The notes: generated by a model from the sequence alone, not told the origin. A stretch of DNA of 32,000 bases from Zygophlyctis sp. KS116 (GCA_054661495.1 BAAFSQ010000101.1:1-32000); one strand, 5' to 3'. Counted from the stretch's first letter, positions 2,845 to 11,720 are shown. A program made the numbers and translations.

Positions 2845-3496
2845 TTAAGAAGCGATCTCCATATTTAATGCAGAAGCATTATTAAAAGTCTTTTCATAGT
2901 GCGTGGACAGAAATTTAACTGAAATTGGAGCGCTTAATAAATTATTATCAATAAAGTTTCCAGAAAGAGTAACATCAGCATGGCGAATTTCTCCTTGACC
3001 AGTTAAAATACCTTGATTCCAAGTCCCAAATTTCTAAATTTAATCAAATATAAAGGTTTACACGACTCCCTGATCCAGAATAAGTATATTCTCCTTGACC
3101 ATGTTTTTTATCATTATCCCATTCACCGATATAATAATCACCATTGGAAAAAGTATATTTTCCCTGTCCTGATCTCTTTCCAAAAGCGAAATTCCCTTCA
3201 TATCTTGATCCATCCGGATAAATAAAAGTCCCTTGACCATGTCTTTGATTATCTGCATAATTCCCAATATAACGATGACCATTTTTCCATTTATAAACTC
3301 CATTCCCTGATCTTTTTCCATTAGCATAAGATCCAGTATAAACATCTCCATTGGGAAAAATATTTTCTCCCTGCCCATGTCTGTCTTGATTCTCATTGCG
3401 ATCTCCAGTATAAACCTATCAATTAGATATCTGCCTTATTACACCCAAGACTGGACCATCTTCTCTGCCTTCTGTATCTGAGCCTGCGTCTGACAT
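2845..3496 (-). CDS. RSPH1: Radial spoke head protein 1-like MORN-repeat protein, 198 aa
   Basis: Spliced (introns 3416-3442 and 3034-3061): MSDAGSDTEGREDGPVLG|VYTGDRNENQDRHGQGENIFPNGDVYTG...RHGQGTFIYPDGSRYEG... Tandem MORN repeats with an RSPH1-type acidic N-terminus. The ORF track shows only a wrong-frame ORF here. Confidence 0.85.
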
Positions 3497-3686
3497 TATT
3501 TACTGATACGTCATTCACTCGGGAAATTCAAAGCCGATCAGTCTATTCCTTGCTGGCATCATTAAGAAACTATTTATCGTCATTATAAACTATTCTTATT
3601 ATAAGTAATCAGCATTATGCATTAATGATTGGATCGAATCATTAAGCAACAATATCAAAAGTGGCACTTATAACCTAGAATTTAAT

Positions 3687-4861: not shown

Positions 4862-7262
4862 ATGAAGGCTGATCTGATTAGATCTGATCTAATACTTTTT
4901 CCAGGTGTAACTGTAAATGTGTTTCCAAATTCTAAATTATTCCATATTCTTAAATCAAATGATCATGATGTTGTAGGAATTGTACCAGTTGATGGAGATT
5001 TAGAATGTGAATATGGATGTTTGGCTTCAGTCACTAGAAAAAATAGAGTTTTTATTCTCCAAGGAACTAAAAGATTCAAGATTTTAGATTGGGAAAATGA
5101 TGTAATTCAAGTCATTGAGGATGATCTAGATTTAAATGATAAGGAAATTATGGGACTATCAAGTCTTTTTAAAAATCAAGTTCAAGTTTTTGCAAAAATG
5201 TTGCATCAAGTTGCGCCAGAGGTTTCATCAGATATTTTATTTTTAGTAGAAAGGAAATCTCCTGTAGCGATTTTATTTCTATTTACATTCTTGATGGATG
5301 TAAAAAATGTAAAATTTCAGATTTTGTCAAGTCAGGATCTCAAGTATAGTTTTGAGATTGGGTTGAAATGGATTGAAGATGCATTAAAGGATTTTAAAGT
5401 TGCTATTGTAAAGATCAAGTCTAAAATGGAAAATTCTAAAAGTACAGTGTCTGATGGTAAAAATGCTCAATCAGCAACAAGTACAACAGGCTCAGAATTA
5501 GAGGATTTGAAGGGGAAAGTAGAGGCTTTAAAACTTCCAGAAATTGTAATGAAGAGTGTAAAGAAAGATTTGGAGAGGTTATCAAGAATCAATCCTAATA
5601 ATGCAGACTATCACGTCATTTTTTCATATTTGGAGTATGTTGTTGATTTACCTTGGGATACGTTGCCTTCAAAGGTTGATATCTTGGAAGCTGAAAGGAT
5701 ACTAGATGAGGATCATCAGGGATTAGATAAAATTAAGAGGCGTATACTAGAATATATTGCAGTTTTTCAACTTACAAAATCTCTAAAAGGTCCCATATTA
5801 TGTCTAGTTGGGCCTCCAGGAACAGGTAAAACTTCTTTAGGTAAATCAATTGCTCGTGCTCTTGATAGGAAATTTTATAGAATTGCTCTTGGTGGTGTGA
5901 AAGATGAGGCGCAAATTAGAGGGCATCGAAGGACTTATGTTGGTGCCCTCCCAGGAGTAATTATTCAATCATTTAGAAAGATTGGCGTAAATAATCCAGT
6001 GATCCTCTTAGGTAATATAATAAGTTAATGAGATAGACGAAATTGATAAGCTGGGAACTGATGGGCGCTCTGATCCTACGTCTGCATTACTTGAAGTCCT
6101 TGATCCAGAACAGAATGAATCCTTTACAGACGCATATTTAAATTTACCATTTGATTTATCTAAAACTGTATTTATTGCAACTGCAAACGATTTGAATCAA
6201 ATTCCAGAACCTTTAAAAGATAGGATGGTATGATAATTTTACTTAATTCAAAAGGAAATAATCAAAATTCCCAGTTATACTATTTTGGAAAAAGTTTCTA
6301 TAGCAAAATCTCATCTTATTTCAAAACAAATTTCAATACATGGATTAAATCCTGAATATCAATCAGAATTTAGAGATTACTTGATTCATTACATTATAGA
6401 AAACTATACTCGTGAAGCTGGAGTCAGGGATCTGGAACGTCATATTGCTGCATTATGTCGATTCATTGTTATTGAAAGCTCTTTTACATCCAAAAAGCAA
6501 GAATTAAAACAAGATTTAATTGAAAAAGTTCTTGGGGTAATTTTATAGATTTTAATTGTAGCCTCCTCTATATTCAAATTTGAAGAAAACCATGACACCA
6601 ATCATTGGCCGAGCCACAGGACTTGCCTGGACCCCTGTAGGAGGTCAAGTCTTATTTATTGAATCCACATCAATGAAAGGCTCTGGAAAACTTTTTTTAA
6701 CAGGTAACTTAAAATTCTAAAAAATCTAGGCAGCTTGGGCGACACAATGAAAGAATCTGCACAAATTGCTCTAACATGGATCAAATCTAATCTAAAATAT
6801 TTCCCATCAGTACGTGAATTCCCATTCAAAGAGACTGATTTTCACCTCCACGTCCCATCTGCTGCAACCCCTAAAGATGGACCTTCAGCTGGAATAACAA
6901 TCTTAATTTCTTTATTATCTCATATCCTTGGAAAACCTATTATAAAAGACTTGGCAATGACTGGAGAGATTACCCTTTTAGGAGAAATCATGCCAGTTGG
7001 AGGAATCAGAGATAAAGTCTTGGCAGCAAAATCCATGAAAATTTCTACTCTAATATTACCAATCGACAATCAAAAAGATTTTGAATTAATCTCTGATATA
7101 CGCGATTTATCAGTTCATTTTGTTGATAGGATAGAATCTGCGATACAGATTGCATTTGAATCTTCTTTTAAAGATCTAGAGCATCATGGAGAAGAAAATA
7201 TCAAGAACCCCAATAGTACTCTCAAGACTCTAAATGATAAGGTTATAAATTGTAAATTGTAA
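4862..7262 (+). CDS. LONP2: Peroxisomal Lon protease (LONP2-like)
   Basis: Walker [10 protein letters not shown], Walker B VILL|[18 protein letters not shown], catalytic PKDGPSAG and GGIRDK; C-terminal CKL (PTS1-type). Introns 6012-6036, 6228-6254, 6537-6561, 6704-6729. Confidence 0.9.
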
Positions 7263-7296
7263 TAAAGTCTCTGAAATCGGAAATTTCCAAGACAAA

Positions 7297-7522
7297 ATGA
7301 ATGGATTGGGAGATAAAAAGATTCGCATGAATGAGCCAGCACCGATTTCTTTTTCATCTTACCATGGCCAATTAAGCGTATATATTTAATTTCTGATCAT
7401 TATAGAACATGGGAATGAAATTTAGAAAATCTATTGCTGAAGGATATAAAACTTGTCAAAAAAAACATGATTCTACTCTACAATCTCCATCATCTCAACT
7501 AAAGAGAAAGAGAGATTCTTGA
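7297..7522 (+). CDS. Small ribonucleotide reductase inhibitor, Spd1/Dif1 (HUG domain)-like, 65 aa
   Basis: ATG at 7297, intron 7378-7405 (28 nt), TGA at 7520-7522. The spliced motif QLS|NMGMKFRKSIAEGYKT matches the Spd1/Dif1 consensus L..VGMRVRKSV.EGYKT. Absent from the ORF track. Confidence 0.8.
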
Positions 7523-7534
7523 AGAATTATAATA

Positions 7535-8176
7535 TTAAAAATCTCTTGATCCAGGCGGTCTTTCTTGTATAGATCTTGGTGGTATTCTATGAGTAATTCC
7601 CATTCCAATATCACATCCTAATAATCCTTTTTGACCATTTCCCCAATTACTATTAGGAGTAACTAGAACTTGTCTCCAAGAATTATTTTTCGTGCTATAA
7701 ACTCCAAGTGTAATTGTTTTATCTCTAGATTCCTTGATTAAATCAAAGAATGATTCCTGATCGTTGAAACATTTATAATCCTTTGCATAAAATATATAAT
7801 CTAAATCTGAAAGTCCTGCATTAGACGCAGGTGAATTATTTATTACTCTAGAGACATGAAAAACATGTTTAAATGCGTCTGATGGATTACAAAATCGTAC
7901 TACAAGTCCTAAACTATTCCAAGAGGAAGGCAATTTAATTTTACGGATATCCATATCCCTGATATTCCTAAAAACTAGAATTATTTCTGAATTTTTCAAT
8001 GGAGTTAATAAATCATTTAAATCAAGATTTGAAGTTGTTGGAAAATCATTAATTCCAATTAAAAAATCAAAATATGGTTCAATTTTTAGATTATAGGCAA
8101 TTGAATTACTTTTTACTTGTATGACATGGTATCCCCCTTGACTGGGTTCATTAATAGTAGATTGTTCTTGGCCCAT
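7535..8176 (-). CDS. GRH1: GRASP55/65 Golgi reassembly stacking protein (two PDZ-like domains)
   Basis: MGQEQS (myristoylation-type N-terminus), GYHVIQV, IEPYFDFLIGIN, VTPNSNWG...GLLGCDIGMGITHRIP. Confidence 0.9.
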   Translation of the reverse strand: MGQEQSTINEPSQGGYHVIQVKSNSIAYNLKIEPYFDFLIGINDFPTTSNLDLNDLLTPLKNSEIILVFRNIRDMDIRKIKLPSSWNSLGLVVRFCNPSDAFKHVFHVSRVINNSPASNAGLSDLDYIFYAKDYKCFNDQESFFDLIKESRDKTITLGVYSTKNNSWRQVLVTPNSNWGNGQKGLLGCDIGMGITHRIPPRSIQERPPGSRDF

Positions 8177-8224
8177 GGGAAGTACTTTGGTAAGTACTTG
8201 ACTTTATGTGATTTTTGGACTAGG

Positions 8225-9925
8225 CAATCCGGAATCGCGTAGTAAAAAGGTCAATTCTCGCGGTTTAAAAAGGACCAGGCATGGTTAATAAATATCTTGT
8301 TTCCAAAGAGAAAGCATAATGCATCATAATGATAATCGCCGGAATATATTATGGACAGTTCTCGCTTGCAAATCAATTCACGAAATAAAGATATAGCTAC
8401 CAAAATGTCTTATTCAAGCCTCTTTTCATTCAAATTTATCATCCCATCATTTAACAGTCTAGCCAGAATAAGCAGCCTTTCCTTTCCGATACGTCGATAA
8501 TTTGCAATCTGTATATCTTCAGGGGCTCCAGTAAATTCATATCTCCAATTCGAATAGTTCTTGTATGGAACCTTGGTATTTGCAACATCATCTAAGATAT
8601 GTCATTTTAATCATAATTACCGCTCATTTTGTTCAGTTCTACACCGATTTTATACTTTAGGTACTCCAACTTTACTTTCTTGTCAGTTGGTATTTTGCTT
8701 TTGATCGTTATTTTGCGTCCAGAATTTATGCTTTTAGATTCTTTTTGTCTAGCAGTTTTTGTAACATGCAAAAACTGATTATAACCTCCCATTTGACTAA
8801 AATTCAAAACGAATTTAACACTTGGAATAGAGCATTCATAGTTACCCTCTTTAAAACCATAGTTTTCCAATAAAAAGAAAAAAGGAATACTAAGAATGCT
8901 TAGAACCTACCAATCATCAAAAACGATGTTATTACTTTAGTGATTTTCTTGGCCGTTTCTAAAATTCTATCCCTAATATCCACAAGTTCCTCTTCTTTCT
9001 CAGCTTTTTCTTTAAATTGTGCATGGTCTGCATTTTTCCAAAGCTCCGCATAAATAGAGCAAAGGGATTTTTGATCATTCCTTTGACTTTTAATTTCTAA
9101 GGCGGCTATTTTTATTATTTTCATGCTTACCCGGGGTAATTATTTGAACAAAGCAATCATATCCAGTTTTGATTCGACGTTTTTTAACAAATCTACCAAA
9201 GTTAAAGCTTTATCGTCCGAAATGACCTTATCATCAACAACAGTGAAAGACATGAATCTCTCGCGGCCATTTTGACTTAAAAATTCATAAGCATAAGCTC
9301 GACTTTGTTCATTATTTACAATTTGAGGCAATGAGCTTGAATCTAGCTTGCCGATAATTGTGAAAAACCCAAGCCCATTTATCAGCTTTCTAGTACATCT
9401 CCTATATTTTCTAGTTCATTCTTACAATGTTGTATTAAGTATTCTATGCCTTCATTAGATTTGATTGTTTTAATCTTGATCTCTTTGGCTTTTAATTTCC
9501 ATGTGTTTTGAACAGAGATTGGGAGATTCTTCCATGCATTTGCTGAAATAACTCTTGCATTGACACCTTGAGCATTTTCTAGGCCTTTCATGTTTTCATT
9601 TCCAAATATATCTACAATATTAATGATAACAATGTACCATATCTACACTCTTTGACAAACAGAGCATATCCAGTCAGCTTGAAAATTTCCCCGGGATTCA
9701 TAGAGTTTTGATGTGTCCGATCTGTTACTTCATGAGCCGCATTGGCCACCGCAGAGCTCTCATACAATAGAACCTGACTCATTTTCGATAAAATTTTCTT
9801 ATCAATTCTCTTATTCAATTTGCTCAAAATTCGCGAAAATCTGCAAAATCCGCGACGCCAAAACAGTACAGAGCCCCTTTTTAAACCCCCAAAAATTAAC
9901 CCTTACTCCCTCACATTCCGGATTG
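8225..9925. repeat. Imperfect ~50-bp inverted repeats (8225-8273 / 9876-9925) flanking the HMG-box gene
   Basis: Left CAATCCGGAAT...AGTAA...GGTCAATT...GGTTTAAAAAGG versus right reverse complement CAATCCGGAAT...AGTAA...GGTTAATT...GGTTTAAAAAGG. Perfect blocks of 11 bp (8225-8235/9915-9925) and 12 bp (8262-8273/9876-9887) in the same order and at similar spacing. No target-site duplication seen. Confidence 0.6.
8410..9782 (-). CDS. Uncharacterised protein with two tandem HMG-box modules and two unresolved frame breaks (possibly a pseudogene)
   Basis: Box 1: LTGYALFVKECRY...ISANAWKNLPISVQNTWKLKAKE. Box 2: KRRIKTGYDCFVQ...IYAELWKNADHAQFKEKAE. Canonical introns 9612-9637, 9106-9130, 8907-8935, 8592-8620; stop at 8410-8412. 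Frame discontinuities near 9385 and 9182. Confidence 0.6.
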
Positions 9926-9957
9926 TGCTCTCGAAATTATAGGCTCTTAAAGAAATA

Positions 9958-10972
9958 ATGGAACAATTCATGGAAATGACGGGTACTAAAGACCAGGGAC
10001 TAGCAGAATTTTATATTTCTTCGGCAGATGGAGATGTAAATAAAGCCGTAAACATATATTTTGAGTCGGTAAAAGGATCTTCTAAAATTGCTACACTCTC
10101 TGGAAATTCAAAAATTCAAAATCCAAATACATTCTTTGCCGGAGGAGATAAATCTGGTGTTTTACTTGAAGGGAATCCAGATAAGCCAAAACAAGATCTT
10201 GTAAAGGAAATAGTAAATTTGGCGTCGCAATCTAAATCTTTTGATGATGAATCGTCTACAGAATCTAGTTCACAATTTAAAGGAACTGGATTCAAGTTGG
10301 GAGCTTCATCGTCAAATCAAGAGTCTAAAAATGAAATTGTTGAAAAACAAGATGAAATTGTAAAATTTAAATCTTTAATATTAGGCTTCTAGAACTCTAA
10401 CATTTTGGAAAAATGGATTTTCTATAGATGATGGGCCTTTAAGAGATTTTAATGATGCAGAAAATGAAGCGTTTTTAAATTCTATAAAAAATGGAATGGC
10501 GCCATTACAATATCTGAATTTGAAACCTGGGCAAAAAGTGGAATTGAAAATCGCACATAGATCTGATCAAGACTTTGAACCTCCTCCAAAAGCTCCAATG
10601 AAGGCATTTAGTGGTACAGGTCAACGGCTAGGTTCTATTGTTCCAGGAGCACCTCTAAATGCCACTACTAGCCTTGGTGCTTCTAGTCCAGAAAAGTCTC
10701 AAAATATTAAATTTCAAGTAAATCAAGATGAACCGATAACTACTGTTCAAATTAGACTAGGAGATGGGACAAGATTGGTATTGAAATGTAATCATTCACA
10801 TACGATAAGACATGTACGGGATTTTATAATTGCCTCAAGACCTGGAGAATCAGCTAGATTGTGGATTTTACAAACAGTACATCCAGTTGTGGTTTTAGGA
10901 AATCTTGATCAAACGATTAAAGAAGCTGGATTACTAAATTCAGTGATTATTCAAAAATATATCAACGTTTAA
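9958..10972 (+). CDS. SHP1: p47/Shp1 UBA-SEP-UBX Cdc48 cofactor
   Basis: FFAGGDKSG, SEP TLTFWKNGFSIDDGPLR, SHP box FSGTGQRLG, UBX TTVQIRLGDGTRL; intron 10360-10384. Confidence 0.92.
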
Positions 10973-11720
10973 CCCAAGCAATCTTCTTTCTTGCTTTAGG
11001 CTGACCAGTCTTTTTCCTTTCCACTTGACGGGTATCTGGCTTTAAAAGTCCAGACTCTTTTAAAATAGATTCTAAATTTGGTTCATGAAGTATTAGACCT
11101 CTAGCAATTCCTAATCCAACAGCACCTGCTTGACTAGACTTTCCTCCTCCATTTACTATAGCCCAAATATTAAATTTCCCCCATACATCTACTGTATCCA
11201 ATGCCTTTACAGTCTGAACTCTTTCTGAATCATTTTGAAAATAGTCTGATAAATGCTCTCCATTGACCATAATTTCCCCTTTTCCTGGAATCAAATACAC
11301 CTGTGCTTTTGAAGTTTTTCTAGAAGCTAGAGAGACTGATCTACCATATTCATCTAATTTTGGATATTCTACGACTGGTCTCTTAAAAAAAGAGTCTGGT
11401 TTCATGTATTTTTCTAAAAAAGTCTGTAATTCTTCTCCTTCATGTTCAGAAAACAAGTGTTTTCTAGAATAAACAAGATCTAATTTTCCCCTTAATTCTA
11501 AATATTCCCTTTCAGATGTTTTTATCGATAGTCTATCCAAGAATTCTCGGTCATTCATCCATCTAACCTTGGGTTTCTCTATTGGAGCAGTTATAGGTTC
11601 AATATCCTGAATTTTCTCGATATACCGATTCAATGTCAACAATGCATCAAAATAGTATGGATTCCCAGTAAAATATGCAGGATGGGACTGTAAATGGGAG
11701 ATTGTGGAGAGTTTTCTCAT
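10962..11720 (-). CDS. MRPS9: Mitochondrial ribosomal protein S9 (uS9m)
   Basis: PAYFTGNP, RKTSKAQV, GGGKSSQAGAV, DTRQVERKKTGQPKARKKIAWVKR. Confidence 0.92.
   Translation of the reverse strand: MRKLSTISHLQSHPAYFTGNPYYFDALLTLNRYIEKIQDIEPITAPIEKPKVRWMNDREFLDRLSIKTSEREYLELRGKLDLVYSRKHLFSEHEGEELQTFLEKYMKPDSFFKRPVVEYPKLDEYGRSVSLASRKTSKAQVYLIPGKGEIMVNGEHLSDYFQNDSERVQTVKALDTVDVWGKFNIWAIVNGGGKSSQAGAVGLGIARGLILHEPNLESILKESGLLKPDTRQVERKKTGQPKARKKIAWVKR

Follow-up and report, generated by a model that had tools for sequence, protein, structure and literature searches.

A probable decayed, transposase-less relic of a KDZ-linked DNA transposon in the bidirectional GRH1-SHP1 promoter of Zygophlyctis sp. 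KS116

The window analysed here, a stretch of 32,000 nucleotides from Zygophlyctis sp. KS116 (GCA_054661495.1 BAAFSQ010000101.1:1-32000), contains an inverted-repeat-bounded cassette between two divergently oriented genes. Domain matches confirmed that these genes are GRH1 (GRASP55_65) and SHP1 (UBA/SEP/UBX) and that both are directed away from the cassette; PF14555 was also matched on the SHP1/p47 products of relatives. One minus-strand gene lies between the repeat arms, in agreement with the original prediction, which had described the interval 8225-9925 as a cassette enclosing exactly one gene. The features of the locus are as follows:

7535-8176, minus strand: GRH1/GRASP gene, first ORF (PF04495 matched on an identical product)
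8177-8217, no strand: residual ancestral spacer on the GRH1 side, the 41 nt upstream of the ATG, colinear with the relative's spacer
8218-9932, no strand: whole inserted element, 1715 bp, delimited by blastn against contig L048 of the closest relative and by reading by eye
8218-8276, plus strand: left terminal inverted repeat, on the side that would have carried the transposase gene
8411-9782, minus strand: HMG-like gene of a KDZ-linked family (ATG at 9782, TAA at 8413-8411), delineated by exon-by-exon homology to paralogues
9863-9932, minus strand: right terminal inverted repeat, about 90 nt upstream of the ATG of the HMG-like gene
9933-9957, no strand: residual ancestral spacer on the SHP1 side, the 25 nt upstream of the ATG, colinear with the relative's spacer
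9958-10972, plus strand: SHP1/p47 gene, two ORFs (UBA/SEP/UBX; PF08059 and PF00789 matched on the L014 and L015 products)

An Rfam search of positions 7000-11000 returned only a sub-threshold U7 match (23 bits against a cut-off of 34), and a tRNA search found none.

The colinear, imperfect inverted repeats that had been predicted from the window are present. A perfect 11-nt block, CAATCCGGAAT, occupies 8225-8235 and has its reverse complement at 9915-9925, and a perfect 12-nt block, GGTTTAAAAAGG, occupies 8262-8273 with its reverse complement at 9876-9887. The order of the two blocks is colinear, the gap between them being 26 nt (left arm) or 27 nt (right arm). When the left arm was aligned locally to the reverse-complemented right arm, 39 of 52 columns were identical and the score was 32. 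This was compared with two null sets, namely 1000 dinucleotide shuffles, which scored 17.6 +/- 2.3 (maximum 29 in the 1000), and 787 native window pairs at equal spacing, which scored no higher than 30. By itself, then, the arm repeat is only moderately significant. It is counted as real because the 11-mer is rare, because the arm has three copies genome-wide, and because the arm ends are the insertion ends. The 12.7-Mb assembly has five occurrences of the 11-mer, including two at the cassette, and a sequence-only covariance model of the arm found three copies in the same 12.7 Mb, namely C879:604-665 in addition to both arms of the cassette. Identity between the left arm and C879:604-662 is 92%, with similarity beginning exactly at 8218. 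The right arm aligns with the left over 9876-9925 and with the C879 copy inward to about 9863, and is much less similar to the C879 terminus than the left arm is. The arms are thus imperfect, about 58 nt long and about 75% alike. The fallback explanation that they are merely two similar promoters does not hold, since the spacers of relatives lack the arms and the arm, with its three copies in the genome, is not a common motif.

The third arm copy lies on a 1.7-kb contig, where the ORF ahead of it (L004 (C879) 2-367) contains a GCR1_C domain (PF12550, E = 4e-10), a domain that also occurs in Crypton-type elements. The ORF downstream of this arm copy showed no similarity to the KDZ N-terminus, and elsewhere it recurs only as a 272-bp fragment, on C404.

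Relatives were found by querying metagenome and read-archive assemblies with the GRASP ORF in a word search. The GRASP proteins of three relatives are 96, 74 and 68% identical to that of the window, and their GRH1-SHP1 spacers measure 126, 104 and 64 bp, respectively, the two genes being adjacent and divergent with nothing between them. The wider order, ribosomal protein S9 - SHP1 - GRH1 - Lon protease, is kept in the relatives, and the longest relative contig also carries TBCA and Mob1 in conserved order. By blastn, contig L048 of the closest relative is colinear with the window over 12866-9933 (95.7%) and 8187-4780 (97.4%). Reading by eye extended the common left flank to 8217 and placed the start of the common right flank at 9933; where the window has the element, L048 holds 56 unrelated nt. 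At the left, the element begins at 8218, where the C879 arm match also starts; at the right, it stops at the mirror-image position in the other arm, 9932, and each end of the insertion falls on the outer end of a repeat. Because the site is empty in all three relatives, none of which has an alternative gene in the interval, 8218-9932 is, as judged from these alignments, a lineage-specific insertion. The predicted cassette limits therefore stood as far as the repeats are concerned and were too narrow in extent, the unit reaching 7 nt further on each side. The empty site of the closest relative is unlikely to reflect secondary loss by excision, against which the two more distant relatives speak.

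Two small differences were noted in the spacer DNA itself. A 10-nt unit is present three times in L048 (2937-2990) and once in the window, and the threefold arrangement may be the relative's own later gain. Just upstream of the GRH1 ATG, window 8176-8199 contains a 12-nt duplication (TGGGAAGTACTT / TGGTAAGTACTT) that is single-copy in the relative.

The HMG-like gene contains four typical GT-AG microintrons of 25-29 nt (9637-9612, 9130-9106, 8935-8907 and 8620-8592), and both of its HMG-like boxes are interrupted by introns. Further features within and beside the gene are:

8291-8411, no strand: 121-nt stretch directly 3' of the stop, 84% identical to C84:16101-16221
8414-8591, minus strand: last exon, encoding the family C-terminal domain (VPYxNYxxWxYxFTGxP...LNxGxIxL)
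9608-9690, no strand: end of exon 1 and intron 1, 83% identical to C64:31237-31311, which lies beside a copia fragment

The 121-nt stretch is read as non-coding because its differences from the C84 copy show no third-codon-position bias; the DNA next to that copy is related to internal sequence of the C756 and C824 elements. Other copies sharing the window element's termini amount to one terminus (C879, 92%), to which the internal fragments on C84 and C64 can be added, with no second complete copy. These three fragments (83-92% identical), which lie among transposon debris, look like the remains of sister copies, going by their similarity. One public contig, L014, fuses the GRH1-SHP1 locus to C64 at 2708-2899 via the shared 83-nt repeat (window 9608-9690); this junction is a chimeric product of assembly and does not represent a structural variant. 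A word search with window exon 8610-8870 gave no candidate, and no orthologue of the HMG-like gene was found in the relatives.

The gene had been described as an orphan, which is incorrect, as at least nine copies of its family are present in the same genome. The last exon matches eight further genome copies (C556, C28, C756, C391, C164, C149, C824 and C312) at 33-47% identity, and the assembly holds no donor copy closer than this in protein identity. Exon 2 matches the C556, C28 and C312 copies (E 4e-9 to 2e-5). Across the family, with gene models at the ORF level only, the architecture is an HMG-like box plus a module starting (I/L)P(F/L)F..LG, this pair occurring twice, followed by the C-terminal domain with the motif given above. 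Genome searches with the arms and the protein thus returned a multi-copy family, three copies of the arm and no second complete element. The family copies seem to be located in transposon-rich DNA. The copies L030 (C391) 5265-6070 and L031 (C164) 5169-5606 are 92-94% identical in DNA, which indicates recent duplication or transposition within the family. An ORF upstream of the C149 copy (L029 (C149) 2968-3579) has motifs, recognised by eye, that we take to be hAT/MULE-like (TRWNGSY..., ...CFFHFMQAL). Three copies have an N-terminal Cys-rich region, at L026 (C28) 4981-5370, L032 (C312) 5512-5898 and L024 (C824) 303-494, with the motif C.EC.KRH..D.CY.KCN..DC....P.GTA.A.H.CQ.V followed by C..YHA.H......CY.C and no match in Pfam; neither the window copy nor the C556 copy has the region. 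Beyond this genome, a profile of the C-terminal domain gave 21 matches at E <= 0.001 among 1.84 billion representative proteins, of which about a dozen are credible, all of them short metagenome ORFs with the same layout on contigs too short to show neighbour genes. A word search with the C556 ORF returned nothing besides its 96% counterpart.

That the gene encodes a double HMG box, as originally proposed, is supported indirectly, through paralogues and a box-1 profile, and not by the window exons taken singly: Pfam searches of the seven window exons one by one gave nothing at E <= 5 besides one chance TPR match. Against PF09011 (cut-off 22.4) the C556 paralogue reached 24.6 bits; against PF00505 the C312 paralogue reached 24.8 bits, slightly below the cut-off of 25.4. 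With a box-1 profile that included the window exon, 22 of 24 PDB matches were HMG-box proteins, the best being NHP6A (E = 0.01), followed by HMGB1, Abf2, SOX, TOX, Capicua and UBF. A diverged HMG-box fold in the family is therefore likely on profile evidence. For the C-terminal domain, the structural model has a strand-helix-helix-strand order with a pLDDT of 70. In a Foldseek search, 9 of the top 16 matches, including all of the first six, were GTF2I domains (14-28% identity), these matches being weak (Foldseek E > 1, structural-alignment Z 2.2-2.9), and the cluster of protein-language-model neighbours carries PF02946. The PF02946 (GTF2I) profile itself, run against the genome, gave no match at the family copies and weak matches elsewhere (C121, C908 and C968), and the C-terminal domain profile run against PDB sequences gave only chance matches to coronavirus HR2 peptides. 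A GTF2I-like fold suggested by the model is thus a lead only. Arrays of sub-threshold matches to the second half of PF02946, several per contig, were seen on C121, C908, C968, C1163 and C1054 and are unrelated to the family.

KDZ elements are a poorly characterised group of transposons. The KDZ transposase profile, PF18758, matches five places in the genome, and three of these (C28, C756 and C149) are no more than about 2 kb from a family copy, in convergent orientation. On C556, a family copy is convergent with a truncated KDZ ORF that keeps the DACFK motif and matches the C28 transposase at E = 1e-6, and the pair is enclosed by 80-bp inverted repeats of 87.5% identity. In the closest relative, a copy with 98% identity to this element adjoins a CCT chaperonin gene; it has a different flank, and similarity begins at the outer end of the repeat, for which reasons the C556 element is regarded as a true inverted-repeat-bounded mobile unit. 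A target-site duplication is not clear-cut from its flanks. Its layout is that of the window cassette plus a transposase remnant. Among the family members, the C556-type copy in the closest relative seems the most complete. No clear terminal repeats were found around the C28, C149, C756 and C391 copies. Because the window arms have no resemblance to the C556 repeats and were not found beside KDZ-carrying copies, their link to KDZ is via the gene family only.

Given these observations, 8218-9932 is probably a decayed, transposase-less relic of a KDZ-linked two-gene DNA transposon lying in the bidirectional GRH1-SHP1 promoter. The parent element would have consisted of a KDZ transposase gene and a convergent gene for a DNA-binding protein with two HMG-like boxes and modules and a C-terminal domain. 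A copy with the two imperfect arms and the second gene, and without the transposase gene, would have entered the promoter after the split from the relative that is 96-97% identical in DNA (3-4% divergent). We infer that a transposase acting in trans, and not break repair, brought it in, and that the arms are the true termini of the element. Of the two alternatives that had been offered for the cassette, the non-autonomous inverted-repeat element in a bidirectional promoter is the one favoured by the three empty sites, the coincidence of insertion and repeat ends, the KDZ-linked family with its many copies and the scattered fragments.

The junctions bear on how the element arrived. As had been remarked from the window, neither a target-site duplication nor a transposase is visible: the flanks at the insertion ends, GATTTTTG and GAAATTAT, are unmatched, and PF18758 has no match between the arms. 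The 56 nt of the closest relative's spacer are also absent from the window at the junction. For the relic of a KDZ-linked transposon, the missing duplication and the missing 56 nt would mean that the junctions were reworked later, or that a fragment was captured in break repair. Since the arms are only about 75% alike despite the insertion being young, they must have been unequal already on arrival. All three of these features (no duplication, lost spacer DNA and unequal arms) would also fit captured filler, that is, an excised or broken transposon fragment end-joined into a double-strand break of the GRH1-SHP1 spacer. We consider that origin unlikely, as both ends of the insertion are inverted-repeat ends, the left one being also the boundary of the C879 copy, which a random break fits worse; moreover, the relative's 56 nt contain the threefold 10-nt unit and may in that part never have been lost.

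The coding sequence of the window copy is interrupted at two positions:

9379-9388, minus strand: first frame break, frame 0 to 2; paralogue homology ends at about 9388 and resumes at 9379
9179-9185, minus strand: second frame break, frame 2 to 1, in an A6 run (9185-9180) that is one A short of the family frame

The C28 paralogue is continuous across the codons equivalent to the second break (..LIRKKDRTSYGHY..). If the gene were instead a domesticated regulator, a working host gene with the arms as promoters, both breaks would have to be bypassed by unusual splicing or -1 frameshifting. The four microintrons are indeed intact, and two GT-AG intervals, 9396-9347 (50 nt) and 9251-9208 (44 nt), would restore the frame, but they span segments conserved in paralogues (the GLGFFTIIG module start and a stretch aligned with C28 and C556), which their removal would cut out. 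The sole GT..AG interval at the first break itself is 11 nt. Formally, the second break is an A_AAA_AAC -1 slippery heptamer in the correct frame. One-nucleotide deletions usually arise in homopolymer runs, and as the second break is in such a run, the heptamer most likely arose by chance when one nucleotide was lost there; no slippery site is present at the first break. Both breaks are read as mutations because the frame-restoring intervals cost conserved segments and the first break lacks a slippery site. Assembly error is unlikely, since the sequence is identical in contigs from two public read sets, although all three may come from one strain. The window gene is thus probably decayed and no longer intact, as judged against its paralogues, and a domesticated regulator, for which no orthologue exists in the relatives searched, is very improbable.

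HMG-box genes are the sex determinants of Mucorales (sexM/sexP) and part of the MAT loci of ascomycetes (MATA_HMG). The window family shares with them a likely diverged HMG-box fold, and its HMG-box content, its presence or absence between close lineages and the inverted repeats at both ends had made it reasonable to propose a mating-type-like idiomorph, in which the HMG gene marks mating type, or a switch that flips between the arms. That second alternative is now barely credible: in contrast to sexM/sexP and MATA_HMG, the window gene belongs to a multi-copy, transposon-borne family (at least nine copies, several of them KDZ-linked) and is frame-broken twice within homologous coding sequence; the empty allele (64-126 bp) has no alternative gene or idiomorph; the flanks differ by 3-4%, above expectation for the idiomorph flanks of one species; the flanking genes differ from those of known sex loci, with no sex-locus synteny; and, unlike the long, near-identical inverted repeats and two orientations of a flip-flop switch, the arms are short (58 nt) and diverged (~75% identity) and the cassette has a single orientation across the genome assembly and contigs from two read sets, three assemblies that possibly represent one strain.

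Fungal KDZ elements include KDZ1-3 and KDZx1 of Cryptococcus and Zisupton/Dileera of rusts (PMC11343200, PMC12730594), and PF18758 transposases are likewise present in this genome. The KDZ elements characterised so far are bounded by terminal inverted repeats and generate 8-bp duplications, and their extra ORFs encode TET/JBP dioxygenases or proteins without a recognised domain (PMC12730594, PMC11343200). Elements of the present genome resemble them in having extra ORFs beside the transposase and, in the case of the C556 sister, in being bounded by terminal inverted repeats and mobile between close lineages. The window element differs from them in having no transposase and no 8-bp duplication and in its size (1.7 kb versus 6-11 kb), and its companion gene encodes an HMG-like DNA-binding protein rather than a TET/JBP dioxygenase or a domain-less ORF. 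A KDZ transposase paired with an HMG-box gene was not reported in the literature searched. Non-autonomous cut-and-paste transposons are comparable in their terminal inverted repeats, lack of a transposase, empty site and insertion into a promoter; unlike these, the window element contains a long passenger gene and has no target-site duplication. MITE families are multi-copy, whereas the window element is effectively single-copy. With regard to the C-terminal domain, the likeness to the I-repeat domains of TFII-I proteins is that the top Foldseek matches of the model are GTF2I domains, weak as these are (E > 1), and the difference is that the family copies are unmatched by the PF02946 profile.

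Because only 41 and 25 nt of the ancestral spacer remain, the arms would have a promoter role, and GRH1 and SHP1 would now depend on element-end sequence for their transcription. The locus is a cleanly dated case of a transposon that splits a compact bidirectional promoter, and two essential-pathway genes with 41 and 25 nt of original upstream DNA offer a test of either a minimal promoter or the donation of a promoter by transposon ends. What looked like an attractive mating-type locus of a chytrid can be struck off as mistaken. The family copies indicate a lineage-restricted family of DNA-binding proteins placed tail to tail with KDZ transposases, while the extra ORFs described for KDZ elements differ (TET/JBP or domain-less). 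Tentatively, the passenger might represent an undescribed class of KDZ companion, confined to this lineage, with a Cys-rich head, two units of HMG box and module and a GTF2I-like tail, which would bind the element ends and help transposition, and the repeats of the relic may have been co-opted as the promoters of GRH1 and SHP1.
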